Below are positions 2,441 to 43,804 of a stretch of 64,000 bases of DNA, piece after piece (within the stretch, counting starts at the first letter, position 1; each line of letters begins with the position of its first letter). A program made the position numbers and the translations under genes. The notes beneath the pieces were generated by a model that was given only the letters and a program-made list of their open reading frames with translations, made no database searches and was not told the DNA's origin. Location: sequence record PQ471515.1; one strand, given 5' to 3'.

Positions 2441-2720
2441 TGATTCGAATCTAACAGGTTATTTTTTACAAGAATCAATGATCAAATTCAGTGAACATTT
2501 TCCAGTACTAGATGGTGTGGAGATGTGGCATGTAAAACCACTCTTCCACACTTTCAGCAAAGAGCACAAAATGTTATTGACTGAGGCTTGTAAATCGAAT
2601 AAAATATGCCAAATCAAGATTGGTGTAAATGTCTACAAAGGATTAGTCATCTTTTTTGACAACAACAGCAACTACTTTTATATTGTTAAGGAGCATTACG
2701 TTGACAAATACAAATACTAA
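2433..2720 (+). CDS. Hypothetical protein
   Basis: ORF track 2412..2720; ATG 2433 overlaps the upstream stop. Confidence 0.65.
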   Translation: MSDDSNLTGYFLQESMIKFSEHFPVLDGVEMWHVKPLFHTFSKEHKMLLTEACKSNKICQIKIGVNVYKGLVIFFDNNSNYFYIVKEHYVDKYKY

Positions 2721-3312
2721 TACATACTTTCGTTATCTTCGCCTAGGGCTTTCCCTACGCCCAATCCGTGGTAAGTGTGATTCACTTGCTGATTTGGATT
2801 ATGCATATGCATTACATTGTGATGGTGTTCAATATGTATTAGGTGACTATGGCACATTCGAAGAATCCAATGACAGTTCAGAAATTATTGCTGGTGTTGC
2901 TAACCTTAACAACATTGCCAATAGTTCTCGTCATGAAATCGTTCTTGAAATTCAGAACTTCATTGAGAAAAATACTGGCAAGCGTACATGGTCATATGTC
3001 GGTACTGATGCACAAATGTCAATCGCATTTGGTAACGAAGATGGTTATGTAGCACAACTTATTATGGATTTCGAATCAGAAGAGAAGTTCCTAGAATACA
3101 AGGAAAAAATCATCCAATCCTTGTTGCAAATGGGTATTCCTGAAGATCGTATGCCTGAAATTCAAAGCATTGATGAGTTTGTTCTTATCCCATCTGATGA
3201 AAAATATGATGCGATGTTTACAGCACTGAACATTCCTGGTGTAGTTGTTGAGTACTTCGATGATGGTGATGGTGACATTTACCTAGATCTCGACGACGAT
3301 GATGATGAATAA
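2701..3312 (+). CDS. Acidic hypothetical protein, probable TTG start
   Basis: In-frame TTG at 2701 preceded by AAGGAG; Asp-rich C-terminus LDLDDDDDE. Confidence 0.7.
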   Translation: MTNTNTNTYFRYLRLGLSLRPIRGKCDSLADLDYAYALHCDGVQYVLGDYGTFEESNDSSEIIAGVANLNNIANSSRHEIVLEIQNFIEKNTGKRTWSYVGTDAQMSIAFGNEDGYVAQLIMDFESEEKFLEYKEKIIQSLLQMGIPEDRMPEIQSIDEFVLIPSDEKYDAMFTALNIPGVVVEYFDDGDGDIYLDLDDDDDE

Positions 3313-4955: not shown

Positions 4956-5211
4956 AGCTGAACTGATCGTGCAAACACTGCGTTTATTGAGGGATTTAGA
5001 TATCCCACGCATGGATGTGAAACTTGAAGATATCTACATTGAATCTCTTAGTGAAGATTACACCGATACCGTAATGATGCTGAATGACGTGCTTTATCGT
5101 ATAGATAGCATCAGTCGTCTTGGAAGTACTTTAAAAGTGAATATGGAAAGAGTTGATAAACTTTACGTACATATATATAGTCTACCCATTTCAATATTAA
5201 ACTATAGATGA
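4948..5211 (+). CDS. Hypothetical protein
   Basis: ORF track 4825..5211; ATG 4948 overlaps the upstream stop. Confidence 0.65.
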   Translation: MTKAELIVQTLRLLRDLDIPRMDVKLEDIYIESLSEDYTDTVMMLNDVLYRIDSISRLGSTLKVNMERVDKLYVHIYSLPISILNYR

Positions 5212-5498
5212 ATATTATATTGATACAAAAAACATATGCGTTATTGATGAAAGAATATACTAATACTTATGATGAAAAGTGCAGTGCAAATCATAATATG
5301 TATAAATTCATTACTCAAGAGTACAGGGATTATATATATGCTGCGTTAGTTGGTAGATATTTCAGTACTAAAAAACGTAAAGAACTCAAAGTTGTAGATA
5401 TTACTTTTTTCTACAACGGGCATATAACAATTCATGGTGTGGAACATAATTCACAAATATATCGTAACTACTCATCCAATGAGGTAACATTTTTATGA
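5208..5498 (+). CDS. Small hypothetical protein, probable distant QFTY family member
   Basis: MNIILIQKTY; similar size and layout to the array. Confidence 0.65.
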   Translation: MNIILIQKTYALLMKEYTNTYDEKCSANHNMYKFITQEYRDYIYAALVGRYFSTKKRKELKVVDITFFYNGHITIHGVEHNSQIYRNYSSNEVTFL

Positions 5499-7374: not shown

Positions 7375-8064
7375 TTGATTAAAGATTTAGATAGAATTTT
7401 ATATGTACTGAGGGGTGTAATTACATTACAACCACAGGTTAATCGTATGGAGAGAGCCTTTGAATTAAAATCAAGAGAAACTCCATATTCACATATATCA
7501 AATGTAGTTGGATCATTCAGTACTGAAGACTCGCCTTATGATATTTGTGTATGTGAAGTACAGCCAAGTTCGGATCTTGGATTTGCTATTTTTGATAAAA
7601 ATCAAAATCTCATTAGTATGTTTCAGTGCAATAATCCTTTTTGGAAAACATGCCTGTATCCAGAGTGGGCTATGCTTGATCCAACAAAGAGTTCCATTAA
7701 AGTATATGACTCTAAAAATGATGAAGTCGTTATTGATTTGGATGAGTCAATGTCAGAGGAAGAACACTTTCAGCTAATGATGATGCGTGCTATGCCTGAA
7801 TACAATGCAATGATTAACACTGTGCAATACATTAAGGATACCATGCCATCGTTGCGTACACATGAGTTTTGTCATCCGGTATTGTATGAACATTTGGATT
7901 TAGATTTCAGTACTATTAAATTTAAAGATAATGTTATTAATTACATTCAAGAGAATGTTAAATTTGATTTTATTAGTACAATGACAAATAATCCAAATAC
8001 TAATTTCAGGCATCAGTACAATGAATCTTTGTCTGGTGGTCGTGATACAACTTGGTGGAAATAA
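7375..8064 (+). CDS. Hypothetical protein carrying the EE-x-FQ motif
   Basis: ESMSEEEHFQLMMM. Confidence 0.7.
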   Translation: MIKDLDRILYVLRGVITLQPQVNRMERAFELKSRETPYSHISNVVGSFSTEDSPYDICVCEVQPSSDLGFAIFDKNQNLISMFQCNNPFWKTCLYPEWAMLDPTKSSIKVYDSKNDEVVIDLDESMSEEEHFQLMMMRAMPEYNAMINTVQYIKDTMPSLRTHEFCHPVLYEHLDLDFSTIKFKDNVINYIQENVKFDFISTMTNNPNTNFRHQYNESLSGGRDTTWWK

Positions 8065-22057: not shown

Positions 22058-22176
22058 TTACTTAGGGAATCTTTCATGATTCCCATTTTATTTGCTGCAT
22101 ATCAAAAAATATTGATCAAAAATTGATCCATACAAGGTAAATACCCAAGGTGTAATTGTTAATAGGGTAGGTGGAT

Positions 22177-34018: not shown

Positions 34019-34237
34019 ATGGATCAATATGAGATAACTTACGATTATTATGGTAAGGCTTATATGAAGTGTGGTCGTTTTGTTGAACTATCGAATAGAG
34101 AAGCAATCGACCCACAAACCATTATATCCATCCATAACTCGTACTATAAAAAAATTACCATAGCTAATTTTGCAACATACGTAGATAATCCTATATTTCC
34201 GTATATTATTCATTTCTATTGTAGAGCTATAAAATAA
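34019..34237 (+). CDS. Small hypothetical protein
   Basis: Abuts the upstream stop. Confidence 0.55.
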   Translation: MDQYEITYDYYGKAYMKCGRFVELSNREAIDPQTIISIHNSYYKKITIANFATYVDNPIFPYIIHFYCRAIK

Positions 34238-34247
34238 GGTAAAAAAA

Positions 34248-34934: not shown

Positions 34935-34960
34935 AAAAGCACCCTAGAGGTGCTTTTTCT
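34935..34960 (+). terminator. Rho-independent terminator
   Basis: AAAAGCACC/GGTGCTTTT. Confidence 0.8.
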
Positions 34961-34993
34961 ATTTGTGCAAATAAAAAGCAATGTGACCTTTCC

Positions 34994-35035
34994 TTGATAT
35001 AGATCAAGAGAAATACCCTGTTCTGACGCTATAAT
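34994..35035 (+). promoter_or_regulatory. FNR box (TTGAT-N4-ATCAA) and -10 TATAAT: class II FNR-dependent promoter of nrdD
   Basis: TTGAT 34994-98, ATAG, ATCAA 35003-07 and TATAAT 35030-35; the box centre falls at -41.5 if the -10 spans -12..-7. Confidence 0.8.
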
Positions 35036-35096
35036 GGTGTCTGGTGATGTTAAATAACTTCACCCCCAGATGATTTCAAAATACAAGGAAAGTAAA

Positions 35097-36902
35097 ATGC
35101 AATTAGATAAATTATATACTGACGTAACAAATTTCCTAAATCAGAGCAATACTGATCTTACAAATGAAAATGCAAACAAAGATGCGAAATGCGTCAATAC
35201 ACACAGGGATTTACTTGCTGGTATCCTATCTAAGCATTATTCACAAGATGTTATTCCAAAGGAGCTAATGCAGTGGCATAATGATGGTTATGGTCATATT
35301 CATGATTTAGACTACTATATCAGCCCATTAACTAACTGTTGCTTGGTTAACTACCCAGATATGCTAAAAAATGGATTTACCATTGGTTGTGCCAAAATTG
35401 AAGAACCAAAGAGTTTTAGTGTAGCATGTACAGTACTGACACAAATTGTACAAGCTGTTGCTAGTTCCCAGTACGGTGGTCAATCGTTGGCTCATATCGA
35501 CGTTGGTCTTGAACCTTACGTCCAAAAGTCGTGGGATAAGCTATTAGCGAAGCAAAAGGCATATAATCTCAGTACTGAATACATTGAGGAAGAATTACGA
35601 AAAGAAGTCTATGATGGGTGTCAAACCTTACTTTACCAGACAAATTCAATGATTAGTACAAATGGTCAAGCAGCATTCATTTCTCTTAGTTTAGGACTGA
35701 ATACTTCAAAATTTGGTAAATTAATCACTGAACAGTACTTAAAAGTACATGAGAATGGTTTAGGTAAAGATAAGATTACTCCTGTGTTTCCTAAAGTAAT
35801 TTTCTTTTTACAGGACGGAATCAACATGAATAGCGATGATTGCAACTATGACATGAAACAGTTGGCAATGCGTTGTGCATCGAAGAGAATCTACCCAGAC
35901 TTCGTTTCTGTGCCGTTAAATCACAAAGTTACAGGAAGTAGCAATACAGCAGTAACTCCGATGGGCTGTCGTTCATTTTTAGGAAAATGGGAAGATGCCA
36001 ATGGAAATGAGCAATATAACGGTCGTTTCAACTTAGGCGTAGTTTCTATCAATTTACCTCTAATTGCTCTTGAAAGTGCCTCAGATGGAGAGTTTTTTGA
36101 TAAAATAGACGAGCATATGAATATTGCATATCGTGCTCAGATGAACCGCGTAGAGCGTTTAAAAGGCACAAAAGCGAAGCAGAATCCGATTTTGTTCATG
36201 GAAGGTGCACTTTCACGTTTAGGGGCAGAAGAAACGATTGACAATCTATTTTATAACGGATATGCTAGTATTAGTATTGGTTACGTTGGTTTAGTTGAAT
36301 GTTCAGAAATTCTGACTGGTTCTATTAGTAAGGAGTTCTGTATGTCAGTACTGAATTATATGAAAGTAAAATGCGATGAGTTCAAAAAAGAGAGTAATAT
36401 AGCTTTTAGTCTATATGGAACCCCAGCAGAGTCACTTTGCTACAAATTTGCACGTTGCATCGAATCTAAATACCCTTCAGTACTAAAACGTGATTACATC
36501 ACAAATTCCTTCCATCAACCAGTATGGGTAGAAAGTTCACCATTTGATAAGTGGAGTTACGAAGAGGGCTTTGCTTACCTCAGTAATGGAGGAAACATCA
36601 GTTATGTGGAATCACCCAACCTAAGTAACAATATTCAAGCACTTGAGACTTTAGTCAATTACGCTTACACAAAGATTCCATATTTTGGCATCAACCAGCC
36701 AATTGACCAGTGTTACGAGTGTGGGTATAAAGGTGAGTTCAGTGTAGATAAACACGGTTTTCATTGTCCAGTATGTGATAATCGCAATGAGAAAACAATC
36801 TCAGTGATTCGTCGTGTTTCTGGATATTTGGGGAACCCATCGTCTCGTGGATTCAACAAAGGCAAACAACAAGAATGTTGTGAGCGTATACAACACAAAT
36901 AA
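35097..36902 (+). CDS. nrdD: Anaerobic (class III) ribonucleotide reductase large subunit, no ATP cone
   Basis: HIHDLDY, TNCCL, SSQYGGQS, TPMGCRSFL, YGTPAESLC, CYECG...CPVC and the glycyl-radical loop RRVSGYLG. Confidence 0.97.
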   Translation: MQLDKLYTDVTNFLNQSNTDLTNENANKDAKCVNTHRDLLAGILSKHYSQDVIPKELMQWHNDGYGHIHDLDYYISPLTNCCLVNYPDMLKNGFTIGCAKIEEPKSFSVACTVLTQIVQAVASSQYGGQSLAHIDVGLEPYVQKSWDKLLAKQKAYNLSTEYIEEELRKEVYDGCQTLLYQTNSMISTNGQAAFISLSLGLNTSKFGKLITEQYLKVHENGLGKDKITPVFPKVIFFLQDGINMNSDDCNYDMKQLAMRCASKRIYPDFVSVPLNHKVTGSSNTAVTPMGCRSFLGKWEDANGNEQYNGRFNLGVVSINLPLIALESASDGEFFDKIDEHMNIAYRAQMNRVERLKGTKAKQNPILFMEGALSRLGAEETIDNLFYNGYASISIGYVGLVECSEILTGSISKEFCMSVLNYMKVKCDEFKKESNIAFSLYGTPAESLCYKFARCIESKYPSVLKRDYITNSFHQPVWVESSPFDKWSYEEGFAYLSNGGNISYVESPNLSNNIQALETLVNYAYTKIPYFGINQPIDQCYECGYKGEFSVDKHGFHCPVCDNRNEKTISVIRRVSGYLGNPSSRGFNKGKQQECCERIQHK

Positions 36903-36910
36903 GGTACATT

Positions 36911-37237
36911 ATGGATTTAAAGCCAATTGTGGTTAACAAATATAAAGAACCGTATGATGTGTATATCGGTCGTGGGTCTAAATGGGGCAACCCATTTACC
37001 CATATCAGTGATAAACAGACCAAAGCCGAGTTCATTGTTGCTACAAGGGAAGAATCAATCGAAAAGTTCAGAGAATACATTATTGAGCGTATTTCTAACG
37101 GTGAAGTTCAGATTGATGATTTACTTGAGTTAGCAGGGAAACGTCTTGGTTGTTTCTGTAAACCGAAATCATGTCATGGTGATGTTCTCGTTGAGATAGT
37201 GAGTGCAATATTAGATGAATTACCAGACGATAATTAA
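36911..37237 (+). CDS. DUF4326-family protein
   Basis: VYIGRGSKWGNPF and LGCFCKPKSCHGDVL. Confidence 0.85.
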   Translation: MDLKPIVVNKYKEPYDVYIGRGSKWGNPFTHISDKQTKAEFIVATREESIEKFREYIIERISNGEVQIDDLLELAGKRLGCFCKPKSCHGDVLVEIVSAILDELPDDN

Positions 37238-37685
37238 AGACGACCTTATTAATGGGGAGGGAGTAAGATGCTCCCTTTTTGTTAGTGGATGCAGTCATGG
37301 GTGTGCCGGATGCTTCAACGAAGAAGCATGGGATTATAGAAGTGGACAAGAGTTCAGTACTGATACAATTGATATAATTTTAGCTGAACTCAGTAAGCCT
37401 TACGTTAGTGGATTATCCCTCCTTGGTGGAGATCCTCTAATGAAAAAGAACATAGAAACAATTTTAGAACTATGTAAGATTGTAAAAGAGACGTATCCCA
37501 ATAAAACTATTTGGTGCTGGAGTGGATATACTTTAGAAGAGATTATGAATAATCATGCTAAAGACATTCTTCAGTACTTAGATGTATTAGTTGATGGTAA
37601 ATTTGTTTCAGAAGAAAAGAATTTAACATTACCATTTCGTGGTTCAAATAACCAACGAATTTTATATAAAAATAAAGACTTTTAA
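37215..37685 (+). CDS. nrdG: Anaerobic RNR activating radical-SAM enzyme
   Basis: GCSHGCAGCFN (CxxxCxxC), LGGDPL, DVLVDGKF and FRGSNNQR. Confidence 0.95.
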   Translation: MNYQTIIKDDLINGEGVRCSLFVSGCSHGCAGCFNEEAWDYRSGQEFSTDTIDIILAELSKPYVSGLSLLGGDPLMKKNIETILELCKIVKETYPNKTIWCWSGYTLEEIMNNHAKDILQYLDVLVDGKFVSEEKNLTLPFRGSNNQRILYKNKDF

Positions 37686-37689
37686 ACAC

Positions 37690-37712
37690 AAGCACCCAAT
37701 GGGTGCTTTTTT
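37690..37712 (+). terminator. Rho-independent terminator
   Basis: AAGCACCC/GGGTGCTT followed by a T tract. Confidence 0.8.
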
Positions 37713-37761
37713 ATTACATTCATAAATACAGTAACTAATATCTAAATTACAAGGGATATGT

Positions 37762-40458
37762 ATGTCAAAGAAAATATATGGTGGCTTAGACGTCACTCAT
37801 AATGTGACAGTTAAAGGGAAAAGAACAGTACAGGGCATCAATGATCAAGTATTTGATGCTAATGGTAATATGGAAATTGATACATATTCCAAAGAAGAAT
37901 TACTTGATGTAATTAGTTTACTTCCAATCTCGCATTATGGTACACATAACTATCTACCTGCTGGGGTATCTGGTGATTTTAATGGTGCATCAGAAAACCA
38001 ATCCCAACGTAGAAACAAAATACTTTTAGAAAACGATGGCACATTAGTACTATTACGTAGTGGTACAAACGGTAGTGTTGAAGGTTTATTTTATTCTTAC
38101 CTAGCGAACGCATTATCCGTTACCGATATGAGCCGTACTGTTAATACAAGCCGTCAGTATAAGCCTGGCTATTTTGGGGCAAACCGTGTTGCTATTGGTT
38201 TATACAATACCGATTCAAAAATACTGTTAGGTCGTTACAATGACACATCTACCAATACTAATGGGTTGTTTATATCAGTAACGAATGGTACATTGGATGA
38301 TACACAACATAGTGGTCTTTTTGTGAACCAAGCTGATATTTCACCTGAAGGTGGGATTGAGTATGCTATGATGGCAGAAGACGGTTCAGTTTATGTATTC
38401 AACGTCCTTAATGAAAATAACAAACTACAGATTGTTGTTGTTCGTGTTGTATTGAATATTGCAAACGGTACTTATACTGCTACCCGAATCACGGGATGGA
38501 CAACAAAAACTTTTTACAATACTACATATACTGCTCAGAATAATATAATCATTACTGACCATGTTAACTCAACTAATATTGCTGATAAGCCCTATGTCTA
38601 TGTACCACAAAATTTGGCTGGTATGGGGATTTATATGACATCTATCGATTTATATGTTGCTCAGGAGCCAGGAACGCAGAACTTCCGATTCAGAATGAAT
38701 GGTGACGCATGGTTCACTATGGCAAACTACAATACCCGACCACAGCATAGTTATAGTTTCAATTTTAACATGAGTACTAAACAATGTAACTTGGATAATG
38801 GGAACGATATTGGTACATTTGCTGCACCATTTGTTGTTACAAACACAGGTTCGGCATTGGTTGCTACTGGTAATGTTCTCAACAACGATCCGTTATATGA
38901 TCATAGCGGTGCAAGAAACATTTACAGTTCATATTATTATCTGAATACAGGTGAAGTATTCTGTACTGCATGTCCAAACTTAGCAGAACCATTACTTATG
39001 CAGAAAGCTAAATTTACTGCACAATCAATATATAGCATGATTAATGTACGTGCGAACATTTCAACTGATTTCAGAAATGGCATAGTTCGTCCTTCATTTG
39101 GTTCAGCAGTTGGTTCTTTTATTAACGGCGTAGAATTGCTTCCAGGGAACAGTACTAAACAGTATTCTCGTTCATCTGGTTCTGGTGCATTCCGTCCATC
39201 TTATGCAGTTCATAAAAGTACTCCTAACTTTACGTTTAATTCTTTATCACGTGGAACCATACAAGGTTATGAGCCAACAACAGAACGTGCTAATGTGACA
39301 GATAACACGAACAACAGAGTTTTTATTAGTTCCATTAGTGGTAATAATGTTACTACTAATGGTGGGATATTCATGGTAGGTCAAAGATATTCCCAATCAC
39401 TATCATATGATAAAAATATGAACGGAACTGGTATCATTAGTGTTACTCAATCTGTACTTGATAATTTCAGAAATGCTGAATACGCCAAAGTACTAAGCGA
39501 CTGGAACTTATCTTCTGCTGCTTATAAAGATATGACATTGTTTGTTCCACAACAAACTGATATACCTGCATTCGTAATGCTAAGTACAGTTACAAATACA
39601 TATCAGAACTATATTAGAATTGCTGAAGTGAATGTGAATACACGTTCAGGTAATATCACTACAATTACCTTCAAGCGTTTAGTACTAGAAAACGTTTACG
39701 GAAGTAACTTTACACCAAATGGTAATGGTAGTTTTGCTTCGTCTTCTGTTGGTTTAACAATATATGATGGTGGTTCTTTCTACTTCATAGGTGGTTCTGA
39801 CCCATTATCTCACCCAACTATTGGTAATACAAACACACACCAATTCAGAGCATATGTAACAAAAGCAACTGCACAATTTGATAGTTTTATTATCAGTGGT
39901 TCACATGCAAGTTATGAGCAAGGTATTCAACCAGCAGCTTTACCTGGTATTGGTTTTGGTTATTTCCAAGCAATAGACTATGTAAACAAAATGACTTTCC
40001 AAAAATGCGGTACTACAATTGCTGATTATAATAACTGGACTGCTCAAGGTGCACCGATTAACGTAGTTTCACAAGACGTTGCTCAAGGTTTTATTGTGTA
40101 CTTCACAGAAGAAACTCCAGTAATTCTTTCTGGTAAAGCATTTACATTACCGATTACTAGTATAAACTTAACTACAGTTAAGGCTAATCCAGCAAACACA
40201 TTATTTCATGTATATGTTAAAATGGAACAAGGTAATGCAAAATATGTAATAACAACTGATGTTATTTCAGAAACTGGTACTACAGCATATAATATTTTCT
40301 GGATAGGTACTATACAAACAAACTCACTACAAATATCAAATGTTAACATACAAAAACGTTCAAGATTGGATATTTTCGGTGCGTCTCTTGAAGCTGCTGG
40401 TTCTTCATTCCCAGTTAGTTATGGCCTACCGTCACAAACAGGAACAATCAATTGGTAA
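37762..40458 (+). CDS. Large virion structural / tail-fibre-like protein (paralog 1)
   Basis: 898 aa, T/S/N/G-rich and beta-rich; N- and C-terminal modules shared with the two downstream ORFs. Confidence 0.65.
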   Translation: MSKKIYGGLDVTHNVTVKGKRTVQGINDQVFDANGNMEIDTYSKEELLDVISLLPISHYGTHNYLPAGVSGDFNGASENQSQRRNKILLENDGTLVLLRSGTNGSVEGLFYSYLANALSVTDMSRTVNTSRQYKPGYFGANRVAIGLYNTDSKILLGRYNDTSTNTNGLFISVTNGTLDDTQHSGLFVNQADISPEGGIEYAMMAEDGSVYVFNVLNENNKLQIVVVRVVLNIANGTYTATRITGWTTKTFYNTTYTAQNNIIITDHVNSTNIADKPYVYVPQNLAGMGIYMTSIDLYVAQEPGTQNFRFRMNGDAWFTMANYNTRPQHSYSFNFNMSTKQCNLDNGNDIGTFAAPFVVTNTGSALVATGNVLNNDPLYDHSGARNIYSSYYYLNTGEVFCTACPNLAEPLLMQKAKFTAQSIYSMINVRANISTDFRNGIVRPSFGSAVGSFINGVELLPGNSTKQYSRSSGSGAFRPSYAVHKSTPNFTFNSLSRGTIQGYEPTTERANVTDNTNNRVFISSISGNNVTTNGGIFMVGQRYSQSLSYDKNMNGTGIISVTQSVLDNFRNAEYAKVLSDWNLSSAAYKDMTLFVPQQTDIPAFVMLSTVTNTYQNYIRIAEVNVNTRSGNITTITFKRLVLENVYGSNFTPNGNGSFASSSVGLTIYDGGSFYFIGGSDPLSHPTIGNTNTHQFRAYVTKATAQFDSFIISGSHASYEQGIQPAALPGIGFGYFQAIDYVNKMTFQKCGTTIADYNNWTAQGAPINVVSQDVAQGFIVYFTEETPVILSGKAFTLPITSINLTTVKANPANTLFHVYVKMEQGNAKYVITTDVISETGTTAYNIFWIGTIQTNSLQISNVNIQKRSRLDIFGASLEAAGSSFPVSYGLPSQTGTINW

Positions 40459-40470
40459 AGGATTAATCTT

Positions 40471-41058
40471 ATGGCATATATTATAAGATCCGATATCGAA
40501 GCTATGTCACAAATCGTAGTCCAGAATAAAAACACTGGACTATCTATTAGTGATATTAATGACGTATCGTATCGAACAGACGCAAATGGGGAATGTACAT
40601 TCCCCCTCTTAACAAAAGATGAAGTTGATTCTATTGTTAACGGTTTACCATTATCACAATATGGTGAACTTTATGATGTATCTAGTTTGTCAATTACATC
40701 AAGCGGTTATTCATTACGTTTTAACCGAGAGATACCTGCATTCATCGGTGGCTATCTTTATAATTACCCTGTTGTTGCAGTGACAGCACCAACAGTGGCA
40801 TCAGGCACACAAACACAATATGTATACGCTACTTTAGTACTGGGTGAGCCAATTTATAGAATCTCAACTTCACAATTACAAGAATCACAGATTATAATGT
40901 TCATCGGGACTATTACCGTTGGAACTTCTGGTATTACTGCTATCAACATTGAACGCGTATCACGATTCAATACATACAGACCAAGTACAACACAAAAAGG
41001 TTCATCTTTCCCAGTCAGTACTGGAAATCCAACACAAACTGGTACATTAGGCTGGTAA
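40471..41058 (+). CDS. Short paralog of the tail-fibre-like proteins (terminal modules only)
   Basis: LPLSQYG N-module and GSSFPVSTGNPTQTGTLGW C-module. Confidence 0.65.
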   Translation: MAYIIRSDIEAMSQIVVQNKNTGLSISDINDVSYRTDANGECTFPLLTKDEVDSIVNGLPLSQYGELYDVSSLSITSSGYSLRFNREIPAFIGGYLYNYPVVAVTAPTVASGTQTQYVYATLVLGEPIYRISTSQLQESQIIMFIGTITVGTSGITAINIERVSRFNTYRPSTTQKGSSFPVSTGNPTQTGTLGW

Positions 41059-41074: not shown

Positions 41075-43804
41075 ATGTCATCCAAACGCATCATTGGTAG
41101 TGCTGCTATACTTGGAAATTTGGCAATTGGTGGAAAGTACGCTATGCGTACTTTTAATGGTACAGCACCAGACGCAAATACAGGTATTGTTGACTATCCA
41201 ATTTATAAAAGATCAGAAGTTCAAAAAATACTTGATATGTTACCAATCTCCCGTATAGGGGAGATGGATTATCTACCATTAAACGTTAATGGTTCATACG
41301 AAGGGGCAACGTCGCTTTCAGATGTATACCGTATGCAGCCAACAATAGTCGAAGATGATGGTACTGGTGTGGTATTACGTGCTGGTACAAATGGTAGTAC
41401 TGAAGGATATTACTATGCATTCATTCGTGATTTGCGTAATATTGATGCACTAACACAAAGTAGTGTTATCAGTACTACATCAAAATATCATCCGAGAATT
41501 CTTCCAAGTACTGAAAATGTTAAACAGTTCATCGGAACGAATGGTTATGAATTGCTAGTTAGCCTATCTAGTGCAAGTAATTATATTTTCACTTTAACAA
41601 ATGGTACATTTAACGAAGTTGCACATATTCACGCTTCTATCGCTGCTACAGCATTTGGTACAGATAAACCATTATATGCACATATCGTCAATGATAAAGT
41701 ATTTGTGTGGTGCAAAGACACTACTATAGCAAACTATGGTTTGGCTTTAACATTATATACTGTTAATACAAGTAGTATTAAAGATGGTACTATGAGTACT
41801 TTTGCTAAGGTTACTGGTTTTTCTGGTCAAACCTTAAGAAGTGTTAACTACACAAGTGCTAATAATTTGAAAATTTATGAAAGATTATATTCAGTTGGAA
41901 CTAGTAGTGATTCATTATTTGAATGCACTTCACCAGTTACACGAGTTGAATATTCAGATTATACAGATTATAATATACAAGCAAACGTAAGTCCCGATTT
42001 ATCAAAGATTAGAATTACATTATTCCCAACTAACCGTTTAGTATCAAATCTATATATTAGTACTGTTTATGCTAGTGGTTTTAGTTTTGTTTACACGATC
42101 AACTCTAAATCATTATCAATTGATGGAAGTAGTAGAGCACCAATAGCAGCGGAATATAATGATGTTGATGGATTCACATTAACAAACCCATTTGCCATTG
42201 AGATGAATAACTTCATGGGTACACAGTTAGGTGTTCCGCAATTAGGCAACGTTGGTTCTATATGCCAAACCTATGACGGTTTGGTATTCAGTACTCGTGC
42301 TCGTTGGAGTTCTTCTGAAACCTATGGTATTCAGGTTTATAACGTAACAGGAACACCATATGATAGTTGGGTTGCCAGTACTCGCAAAGCGAACAATTCT
42401 AAATTTGTAAACGTTGCCCCAACATATGGTAGTGCAGTAGGTGAAAACCTTTTAGGAACACGTTTTATTGATAAACGTAAAGTACTGTTAGCATGTTCTG
42501 GAACATATGAAGATGAGTCATATGGTTATAACAATACAGTATTTTCTGAAATTGGTACTGATCCAACCTTCCAGTTCAATTCAGTACAAAACAATACAAC
42601 ACTTAATGGTTTTGCACCACAAGCCAACCGAACTCGCCTCGGCGACAACTACAAATATACAGGTATGATTTCATTAATTGATACTGACGGTTCAGTTAAA
42701 TGTTATGGGACATCATTCATTGAAGGTGTATACAAAACAAGTGGTGGTTTGTTTAACCCAGATACTTTAGAATTTGATGGTTCTTATACAATTGGTGATA
42801 ATGTTCTGGAAACATTAAAACAAGAAATACTTGCTAATATTGGAATAGTAGGAGCATTTACTGGTAAAATTGCTTTATATTATGTACCAGATAGTTCTTT
42901 CTCAAAATCTATTGCGGTGGTTTCTGCATATAACTTAGGCAATAACCAAGGTTATGCAATATATTCTGAAGTTGATGTTACAATTTCAGGAACCAATATT
43001 AGTTCTGCGACTATGGTGAGTTCTAGATACGAAACACTTAATTCTGTAACAGGTATTGTAACTGAAGCCTATATGAAACGCTGTACTGGTCTAACTGTTG
43101 CAAAGTATTCTGGCTTTGGTTATATTGGGGTTGATGCAGTTCATCAGTTTTCACAACCAGGTAATGCTCAATTCAAATTGATGATTGCTAAAACAGTGAA
43201 TGGTTTGATTACATCTAACCGTTTTATGTCATCCAGCTACATAGATAATGGCAATGCATTCCAGCACGGAGTTATACCAGGTGTTGGATTTGGATACTAT
43301 CATCTACAAGATTCAGATTATCAAACCAAAGCAGTGTTTAGTCTCTTCGGGACAACATCAGCACAGATGGATGGGTTGATTGATGGTTCAGGAACTGTAC
43401 AAGATAAAATCGTAGTAGTTTCACAAGATGTTGCTGAAGGTTTCACTGTGTACTTCACCCGTGAAGTTCCGGTATTCCTTGGTGGTATGTTTGATAGATT
43501 AGCGATTCAAACCATAGAATTAAGTACTATTAAAACTAACCCAGCTAACAGTACTTTTTATCTTTACATTCAAATGAACCGTAACACAAGAAAAGCGGCA
43601 TACGTTATCAGTACAACTCTTCTTGATGAGACATTGACAAACGTATACGTTGGTGATATTGTTACTGGAAGTACGAGTATCACGTCAATTGATACGGAAA
43701 AGGTAACACGATTCTTGACATACAGACCTAGTACAACCAAGCGTGGTTCTGCTATCCCTGCAAGTACTGGTGTTCCTTCAAGCTCTGGTACACGTTGGCA
43801 TTAA
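41075..43804 (+). CDS. Large virion structural / tail-fibre-like protein (paralog 3)
   Basis: 909 aa; LPISRIG, LRAGTNGSTEGYYY, VSQDVAEGF and GSAIPASTGVP shared with paralog 1. Confidence 0.65.
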   Translation: MSSKRIIGSAAILGNLAIGGKYAMRTFNGTAPDANTGIVDYPIYKRSEVQKILDMLPISRIGEMDYLPLNVNGSYEGATSLSDVYRMQPTIVEDDGTGVVLRAGTNGSTEGYYYAFIRDLRNIDALTQSSVISTTSKYHPRILPSTENVKQFIGTNGYELLVSLSSASNYIFTLTNGTFNEVAHIHASIAATAFGTDKPLYAHIVNDKVFVWCKDTTIANYGLALTLYTVNTSSIKDGTMSTFAKVTGFSGQTLRSVNYTSANNLKIYERLYSVGTSSDSLFECTSPVTRVEYSDYTDYNIQANVSPDLSKIRITLFPTNRLVSNLYISTVYASGFSFVYTINSKSLSIDGSSRAPIAAEYNDVDGFTLTNPFAIEMNNFMGTQLGVPQLGNVGSICQTYDGLVFSTRARWSSSETYGIQVYNVTGTPYDSWVASTRKANNSKFVNVAPTYGSAVGENLLGTRFIDKRKVLLACSGTYEDESYGYNNTVFSEIGTDPTFQFNSVQNNTTLNGFAPQANRTRLGDNYKYTGMISLIDTDGSVKCYGTSFIEGVYKTSGGLFNPDTLEFDGSYTIGDNVLETLKQEILANIGIVGAFTGKIALYYVPDSSFSKSIAVVSAYNLGNNQGYAIYSEVDVTISGTNISSATMVSSRYETLNSVTGIVTEAYMKRCTGLTVAKYSGFGYIGVDAVHQFSQPGNAQFKLMIAKTVNGLITSNRFMSSSYIDNGNAFQHGVIPGVGFGYYHLQDSDYQTKAVFSLFGTTSAQMDGLIDGSGTVQDKIVVVSQDVAEGFTVYFTREVPVFLGGMFDRLAIQTIELSTIKTNPANSTFYLYIQMNRNTRKAAYVISTTLLDETLTNVYVGDIVTGSTSITSIDTEKVTRFLTYRPSTTKRGSAIPASTGVPSSSGTRWH

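Follow-up and report, generated by a model that had tools for sequence, protein, structure and literature searches.

A conserved FNR-type box upstream of the anaerobic ribonucleotide reductase operon of Escherichia phage Turkey3 and its relatives

The genes for the class III (glycyl-radical) ribonucleotide reductase (RNR) of Escherichia phage Turkey3 are preceded by a 14-bp palindrome of the type bound by the host oxygen sensor FNR. We consider it probable that this palindrome is a working site for host FNR, one that would make transcription of the nrdD-DUF4326-nrdG operon depend on anaerobiosis of the infected cell. The stretch of DNA analysed, hereafter the window, comprises 64,000 nucleotides of record PQ471515.1 (window position equals record position minus 62000), and all genes surrounding the nrdD site are carried on the + strand. 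Between 34600 and 37800 the window is 100% identical to Turkey3 (361 kb), a relative of 121Q and RaK2, and 88-99% identical to 121Q, PBECO4, G17 and other Asteriusvirus jumbo phages. An earlier note on this DNA had proposed that a class II FNR promoter drives the operon. FNR control of the operon is well supported by the comparison with other phages that is reported here, and the promoter itself appears to be more elaborate than the note had assumed.

The elements named in that note, which are the perfect box, the TATAAT hexamer, the upstream terminator and the three-gene operon, all lie where it had placed them, as judged from the sequence, from scans and from Pfam matches (Table 1). The sequence at TATAAT is CGCTATAAT, which lacks the TG of an extended -10 element, and the hexamers at 16-18 nt spacing from it match TTGACA at just 1-3 of 6 positions. 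A sigma-70 consensus scan called no promoter at the nrdD site because no -35 hexamer meets its threshold, in agreement with the earlier statement that there is no recognisable -35. The half-site TTGATA was itself considered as a -35 and rejected, there being no -10 at 16-18 nt from it and TATAAT lying 30 nt off. When the -10 hexamer is set at -12 to -7, the predicted start (+1) falls at 35042 and the centre of the box, 35000.5, falls at -41.5; the arithmetic of the earlier note was thus right. The gap of 22 nt on which it depends is matched by gaps of 21-23 nt in ten other lineages. On the upstream side, the hairpin at 34935 is kept in Asteriusvirus, Alcyoneusvirus and Munch-like relatives, with a terminator annotated at the same place in G17, and it is predicted to close the upstream transcription unit and to insulate the nrdD promoter. 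On the downstream side, nrdD starts with the ATG at 35097 that is annotated in Turkey3, G17 and others, its product has no ATP cone, and G17 carries an annotated terminator 3' of nrdG. Turkey3 encodes a separate class I RNR elsewhere.

It is comparison that makes the box significant. Regions upstream of nrdD were taken from GenBank relatives and IMG/VR contigs and yielded 18 jumbo-phage loci, no two of them identical, which represent five or more lineages: Asteriusvirus; Alcyoneusvirus (RaK2, KP13-7); Salmonella phage Munch and its relatives; Mimasvirus GAP32 and its relatives; and Eneladusvirus (Yersinia phage fHe-Yen9-04). Conservation in relatives had been named by the earlier note as a check on its claim, and the box is kept in all 18 loci, with 0-1 mismatch and 83-97 nt 5' of the nrdD ATG. 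The half-sites TTGAT and (A/G)TCAA are constant, the sole variation being A or G at position 10, and the four central bases occur as ATAG, TCAG, TTAG, TTAA, CTAG, CCAG and TTAT. When the loci are stacked without gaps on the box, the only invariant blocks are TTGAT, TCAA (after A or G) and a downstream TAAATA. Mean pairwise identity is 0.89 in the box and 1.00 in TAAATA, as against 0.47 in the 43 nt upstream of the box and 0.47 in the 43 nt downstream of it, and between clades the spacer from box to TAAATA is 30-47% identical. The outer base of each half-site separates FNR sites (TTGA...TCAA) from CRP sites (GTGA...TCAC). All 18 jumbo-phage boxes have T as the outer base of each half-site (TTGA...TCAA), and neither a perfect box nor the intact half of a one-mismatch box has G or C there in place of T and A; the sequence thus identifies the box upstream of nrdD as FNR-type and not CRP-type.

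Table 1. Elements and genes of the nrdD region (window coordinates).
Feature	Position	Strand	Details
Intrinsic terminator AAAAGCACCC-TAGA-GGTGCTTTT with T tail	34935-34963 (hairpin 34935-34957)	+	9-bp stem, 4 GC pairs
Near-palindrome ATTTGTGCAAAT (TTTGTACAAA in several relatives; TTTGT(A/G)CAAA)	34961-34972		Alignment and box-anchored stack
FNR-type box TTGATATAGATCAA	34994-35007		10/10 consensus positions of TTGAT-N4-ATCAA
Sigma-70-type -10 hexamer TATAAT	35030-35035	+	22 nt 3' of box; no TG, no -35
Predicted start of putative FNR class II transcript	35041-35044	+	Calculated from the -10 hexamer
TAAATA, likely T4-type late-promoter core	35051-35056	+	43 nt 3' of box; predicted start 35062
Shine-Dalgarno region AAGGAAAG for nrdD	35086-35093	+	Read from sequence
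nrdD, class III (glycyl-radical) RNR, 601 aa	35097-36902	+	Pfam NRDD E=5.5e-167, Gly_radical E=3.6e-23
DUF4326 gene, 108 aa, between nrdD and nrdG	36911-37237	+	Pfam DUF4326 E=2.9e-24; PHROG 464
nrdG, radical-SAM activase of NrdD	37215-37685	+	Pfam Fer4_12 E=2.6e-53, Radical_SAM; start overlaps DUF4326 end
Terminator closing the operon, AAGCACCC-AATG-GGTGCTTTTT	37690-37714	+	Hairpin nearly the same as the upstream one

Genome-wide scans covered 349 kb (97%) of Turkey3, that is, all but the first 12 kb of the record, and found three perfect boxes, of which two lie within long open reading frames and the nrdD box is the sole perfect intergenic copy. The other perfect box of the window, at 7592, is intragenic and was taken as chance. 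Taken together, conservation and position indicate that the box is real, under selection and specific to nrdD. Two further places carry box-like sequences near a TAAATA. In the intergenic region 22058-22176, repeated TTGATC and ATCAA motifs (ATATCAAAAAATATTGATCAAAAATTGATCC) stand just 5' of TAAATA at 22138, with a 1-mismatch FNR-like box at 22092 that is spaced 32 nt from TAAATA, as opposed to 43 nt at nrdD. A second 1-mismatch box, ATGATCTAGATCAA, is intergenic outside the window, at Turkey3 record positions 319619-319632 (L222, 43619), 18 nt 5' of a TAAATA and upstream of a coding sequence at record 319693; its geometry also differs from that of the nrdD site.

A reader for such a site is available in the host. 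When E. coli FNR was compared by tblastn with 50,697 phage records, no homologue was found save one weak match in a 7.7-kb Listeria record, and a phage-encoded FNR was rejected for this phage group; fnr is present in the E. coli host. Any reader of the CRP/FNR family would therefore have to be the host's, and a general phage operator does not fit, since the box is unique to nrdD in the genome. The E. coli FNR site is TTGATnnnnATCAA, and 19 of the 23 directly activated promoters have their site at -41.5 +/- 4, class I sites near -61 being rare (PMC3688515). The host nrdD (nrdDG) operon is itself activated by FNR (PMC2892513, PMC3688515), so that the earlier note was right in calling enterobacterial nrdDG FNR-controlled.

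The arrangement is found beyond the jumbo phages. A FNR-type box followed 21-23 nt on by a TAnnnT hexamer is also present 5' of nrdD in several unrelated phages. Phapecoctavirus ukendt has a terminator, the box TTGATTTTCCTCAA and, after 22 nt, TAGAAT; locus L033 (a 98% match to E. coli phages phiWec179/181/186) has a terminator, TTGATCCTGAACAA and, after 21 nt, TGgTAAAAT; Aeromonas phage PAc has TTGATATGGGTCAA and, after 21 nt, TGaTAAAAT; and Justusliebigvirus ALITA, a case discussed below, has TTGACTAAGATCAA and, after 22 nt, TAAAAT. Two IMG/VR contigs of 45-53 kb and 56% GC, whose closest cultured nrdD genes are those of Aeromonas phages, carry a terminator, a perfect FNR/ANR-type box (L063, 624-637; L071, 622-635) lying 66-72 nt 5' of nrdD, and TA(A/C)CCT 22 nt after it. 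In a set of 80 IMG/VR loci, the density of boxes with no more than one mismatch is 10 times higher upstream of nrdD than in coding plus downstream sequence, some of the upstream matches being ATP-cone coding sequence. In a maximum-likelihood NrdD tree, from which truncated, split and host-like rows were excluded, the box-bearing genes fall in two distant, well-supported clades; the box was therefore gained independently at least twice. No box was found in T4, in KVP40-like, rV5-like or FelixO1-like phages or in Aeromonas phage LA93P2, and there nrdD directly follows another gene or has an N-terminal ATP cone. A TAAATA lying 42 nt after the box in L033 was not counted, as it shares bases with the Shine-Dalgarno sequence and has AAAATA as its counterpart in ukendt, and a scan of IMG/VR for box-N43-TAAATA was uninformative among the matches listed.

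The one other element as invariant as the box is TAAATA, which the earlier note had missed. It lies exactly 43 nt 3' of the box in 18 of 18 jumbo-phage loci, the most strictly kept geometry of the region, while its distance to the ATG varies from 33 to 47 nt. The -10 hexamer moves between these two fixed points: it stands 22 nt from the box in Asteriusvirus and Alcyoneusvirus, where TATAAT is perfect, and 23 nt in the other clades (TATAAT is perfect also in Munch-like phages, at 23 nt, and degenerate in GAP32-like phages), and the gaps compensate, with 22 nt plus 15 nt to TAAATA in one arrangement and 23 plus 14 in the other. Throughout Turkey3 the hexamer TAAATA is avoided. It is the rarest of 15 hexamers of the same composition in the window (the + strand carries 19 copies and the - strand 5, where the other hexamers number 36-72), and genome-wide it occurs 191 times against 480-667, a depletion of 2.5-3.5x. 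The 55 intergenic copies in the genome lie mostly 31-44 nt 5' of an open reading frame, the nrdD copy about 46 nt before the ATG. Copies in the window include those at 22138, 35051, 37723, 47562, 50820 and 62207, and genes with TAAATA on their 5' side include those for the tail sheath, the baseplate, large structural proteins and a spanin. Since it is depleted overall and concentrated 31-46 nt before gene starts, TAAATA is likely the core of a gp55-type (T4-type) late promoter in Turkey3. Indeed, the phage encodes a gp55-type late sigma (PHROG 12791/234; record 191432-192370), an RpoD-like sigma (record 308471-309436) and a sliding clamp, and ATAAATA has been reported as a late motif before structural genes in CBB and GAP32 (PMC5259590). 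The bases before the hexamer at nrdD deviate from the T4 motif (GT TAAATA versus TA TAAATA). T4 numbering puts the first T of TATAAATA at -13 (PMC2988020); on this basis TAAATA would occupy -11 to -6, with the predicted start given in Table 1 and the centre of the box at -61.5. With 20 bp between the two putative starts, one FNR dimer would be in phase with both.

For Turkey3 the simplest mechanism would be class II activation at TATAAT, an arrangement that recurs in independent lineages and that we regard as plausible but incomplete. Only without oxygen would dimeric [4Fe-4S]-FNR bind 34994-35007; it would recruit the host RNA polymerase to a promoter that, having TATAAT but no -35 and no TG, would otherwise be incompetent, and activation from -41.5 would start transcription near 35042. 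From TAAATA this dimer would be exactly two helical turns more distant (-61.5), and it could aid late transcription, or be required by it, via the alpha C-terminal domain. As the twin terminators isolate the cassette, FNR and not read-through would set its level, and with an aerobic class I RNR encoded elsewhere the class III enzyme would be needed only without oxygen. FNR binding, activation, the two start sites and the responding RNA polymerase holoenzyme are all predictions here, drawn from the elements themselves, their geometry, their conservation and their specificity to nrdD. The class II proposal of the earlier note thus stands as to the box, its geometry relative to the -10, the weak core and the insulation by a terminator; it had taken no account of the TAAATA core 15 nt after the -10, and the -10 on which it relied shifts or decays in some relatives.

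Several observations weigh against so simple a switch. Box counts by themselves give no significance: the window has two perfect boxes against 0.42 expected, a number that 5 of 100 shuffles reach, and nine boxes with at most one mismatch against 8.65 expected. With counts so unremarkable, significance rests on position and conservation. The -10 has decayed in fHe-Yen9-04 (TTGAAT) and in a further locus, L037 (TTTTTT), beside a box that is still perfect; class II activation can thus be only part of the explanation. In RaK2 and the Munch-like phages the -10 is part of TGATATAAT, an extended -10 with its TG, and a promoter of this type should not need an activator. The invariant TAAATA could drive late expression independently of FNR, and if the late promoter fires without FNR, then FNR is not the sole decider of nrdD expression. 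Moreover, the RpoD-like and gp55-like sigmas of Turkey3 may or may not be compatible with FNR. Among the other lineages, ALITA is a doubtful case because its putative promoter is separated from nrdD by a terminator-like hairpin. T5-like phages were not counted, the box being poorly conserved there (1 mismatch in the EPS7 subgroup only, 2-3 elsewhere) and standing about 70 nt 5' of a strong constitutive TTGACA-17-TATAAT promoter.

Because the 43-nt spacing is invariant, the box of the jumbo-phage clade may be coupled also, or mainly, to the late promoter. In its full form this explanation holds that FNR acts mainly or only on the TAAATA promoter, in a class I-like manner from -61.5 through the alpha C-terminal domain and a gp55-type sigma, TATAAT being secondary or lineage-specific. 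We think of it as a tentative alternative, clearly less probable than an FNR site as such. It would explain why the distance from box end to TAAATA is held at 43 nt in 18 of 18 loci while identity across the spacer has fallen to 47% (30-47% between clades), why the gaps on either side of the -10 compensate, and why the -10 can decay in two lineages beside a perfect box. By T4 numbering (PMC2988020) the box centre would be at the canonical class I position (PMC3688515), TAAATA behaves like a late core genome-wide, and a gp55-type sigma is encoded. The non-jumbo lineages that carry the box, however, show class II spacing and have no TAAATA at 43 nt, and -61.5 depends on a start offset that is derived from T4 and predicted for these phages. 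We are aware of no case in which a class I activator of the host acts on a gp55-type holoenzyme. Nor does the T4 late-transcription review describe one, T4 late promoters having no upstream element (PMC2988020), and natural class I FNR promoters are rare (PMC3688515).

The two modes of action may also be combined. One FNR dimer could be phased for two promoters and two holoenzymes, a sigma-70-type -10 (box at -41.5) and, 20 bp on, a gp55-type late promoter (box at -61.5), a possibility that we put forward with reserve. If it were true, the presence or absence of oxygen would control the early as well as the late transcription of the anaerobic RNR, and the 43-nt spacing kept in at least five jumbo lineages would be the first indication that a cellular class I activator can work on a T4-type late promoter.

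It is unlikely that the promoter is constitutive, via TATAAT and/or the late promoter, with the box a neutral or weakly modulating relic or even a negative element that hinders the late promoter or read-through from upstream. A perfect -10 can give some activator-independent activity, and both the TG of the RaK2 and Munch-like versions and the presence of a late promoter fit such an explanation. A relic, however, would not stay invariant, nor keep a fixed 43-nt spacing, amid flanks that have drifted to 47%. The predicted positions of -41.5 and -61.5 are, moreover, activating ones (PMC3688515), and activation suits the oxygen sensitivity of a glycyl-radical enzyme.

Equally improbable, if not slightly more so, is that the palindrome is the operator of another protein, be it a phage regulator or another host factor, with its likeness to an FNR site coincidental. 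Turkey3 has hundreds of unannotated small proteins, the additional conserved flanking elements TTTGTACAAA and AAATACCC are unexplained, and FNR binding is predicted from sequence. But the conserved positions are exactly the ten consensus positions of FNR, including the base that discriminates it from CRP, and the box was gained two or more times, each time in front of nrdD, by phages that are unrelated and infect different hosts. One would expect the operator of a phage protein to recur at several promoters, but the 349 kb scanned contain no second perfect copy between genes; nor did the search for FNR homologues reveal a gene of the CRP/FNR family in this phage group.

Three further candidates were examined and set aside. 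An RNA element or riboswitch in the leader was rejected, RNAalifold giving 0 pairs for the leaders of 17 relatives, Rfam giving only noise on the nrdD leader, and the single-sequence fold having z=-0.74. Capture of the promoter from the host was rejected: blastn of the phage promoter region against 5,426 E. coli genomes gave no match, and the nrdDG promoter of the host is built differently. As to co-regulation by NrdR, no NrdR-like box was found in 34937-35096 at up to 3 mismatches, a weak test because host NrdR boxes are themselves degenerate.

The surroundings of the operon have some features of their own. The pattern AAGCACCC-N4-GGTGCTTTTT occurs in the 64-kb window only at 34937-34958 and 37690-37711, against 0.02 occurrences expected, and the near-identical terminators that flank nrdD-DUF4326-nrdG could reflect a duplicated terminator or a once-mobile cassette. 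In the GAP32/fHe-Yen9-04 clade (L023, which is GAP32, and L024, L025, L029, L035, L036 and L037), a terminator-like CCCC-N7-GGGG hairpin with a T run sits between box and TAAATA, about 8-35 nt 3' of the box, whereas the Asteriusvirus terminator lies 5' of it. The near-palindrome of Table 1, whose TTGT.CA is retained in most jumbo relatives, is about 34 bp 5' of the box centre, at -75.5 relative to the predicted class II start, and may be either an UP-like region or a place where a second factor binds. In many relatives a gene of about 120 aa, T4 vs.6-like and annotated 'glycyl radical cofactor' or 'pyruvate formate-lyase', lies between nrdD and nrdG, at 2783-3145 in A4 (L007), 4968-5330 in Munch (L004), 5042-5404 in RaK2 (L003) and 2668-3030 in fHe-Yen9-04 (L009). 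Turkey3 has no such intervening gene. The name of the gene resembles that of host GrcA/YfiD, and the host yfiD/grcA promoter is FNR class II (PMC3688515).

Many other putative promoters of Turkey3 are of the GTGATATAAT extended -10 type, unlike the nrdD promoter; such elements stand without a -35 in several intergenic regions, at about 5953, 12873, 20529, 24056 and 29444. Pfam detects only regions 2 and 3 in the RpoD-like sigma, which may be a hint that extended -10 promoters are read by a phage sigma. Further from the site, 229 nt at 34019-34247 are unannotated in both Turkey3 and G17 and hold a 72-aa open reading frame with an ATG start (34019-34237) and no Pfam match. Downstream of the operon, 37762-40458 and 41075-43804 encode two paralogous proteins of about 900 aa (PHROG 3573), annotated as minor tail proteins in fHe-Yen9-04; between them, 40471-41058 encodes a 195-aa protein (PHROG 26864) that matches their C-terminal part. 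The first of these paralogues has CATAAATAC upstream.

If FNR does control the operon, then large lytic coliphages and several unrelated phages would read the oxygen sensor of their host directly, making the oxygen-labile class III RNR only in anaerobic cells and using class I enzymes otherwise. This would be a clean case of a global host regulon extended to an auxiliary metabolic gene carried by a phage, with a bearing on phage replication in the gut and on phage therapy at low oxygen. The anaerobic, gut-like niche that the earlier note had proposed is plausible, as relatives come from faeces, manure and sewage. In addition, the fixed spacing to the late core raises the question of whether host activators can act on holoenzymes that carry a phage sigma. 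With E. coli K-12 as host and a site of only 14 bp, the association between FNR and nrdD is easily tested. In the open-access literature on FNR and phage nrdD, or on promoters and RNA sequencing in this phage group, we found no report of an FNR site upstream of nrdD and no transcriptome for this group of jumbo phages. FNR-dependent promoters, and host regulators co-opted for phage metabolic genes, are already known; the nrdD case appears to be unreported in that literature.

The putative phage promoter shares features with several known systems. The class II FNR promoters of E. coli (narG, dmsA, nirB, nrfA, yfiD/grcA, pflB) likewise have a consensus site at about -41.5 from the predicted start and a poor or absent -35, and likewise serve oxygen-sensitive anaerobic enzymes. 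The phage site differs in lying on a lytic genome, in having a perfect box where most host sites are imperfect, and in its late core at a fixed 43 nt; activation in the phage is predicted by analogy. The nrdDG promoter of E. coli and Salmonella controls the same gene pair, nrdD and nrdG, through FNR (PMC2892513; PMC3688515). It has two FNR sites, TTGAGctacATCAA and TTGATgcaaAGCAC, 31 bp apart, compared with one in the phage, and AT-rich palindromes read as NrdR boxes (their existence is documented in PMC2892513), of which the phage has no counterpart. The different architecture, the lack of DNA homology to any of the 5,426 E. coli genomes and a NrdD without ATP cone argue that the phage promoter was not copied from the host. 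T4-type late promoters, read by gp55, resemble the phage TAAATA in that the core stands before structural and lysis genes, is counter-selected elsewhere and is accompanied by a gp55-type sigma and a clamp. In T4, however, it is the DNA-loaded clamp that activates them, and an upstream element is absent (PMC2988020); the nrdD core, in contrast, has an invariant putative host-activator site at a fixed distance that would be class I, and nrdD is not a typical late gene. Finally, the nrdD site may be viewed beside host-regulator boxes at other auxiliary metabolic genes of phages. PhoB boxes before pstS and phoA of cyanophages, and NtcA sites in cyanophages, are of this kind. There too a metabolic gene of a lytic phage is placed under an environmental sensor of the host and expressed only when useful; the nrdD case differs in the sensor (FNR, for oxygen), in the hosts (enterobacteria and Aeromonas) and in the gene, a class III RNR.
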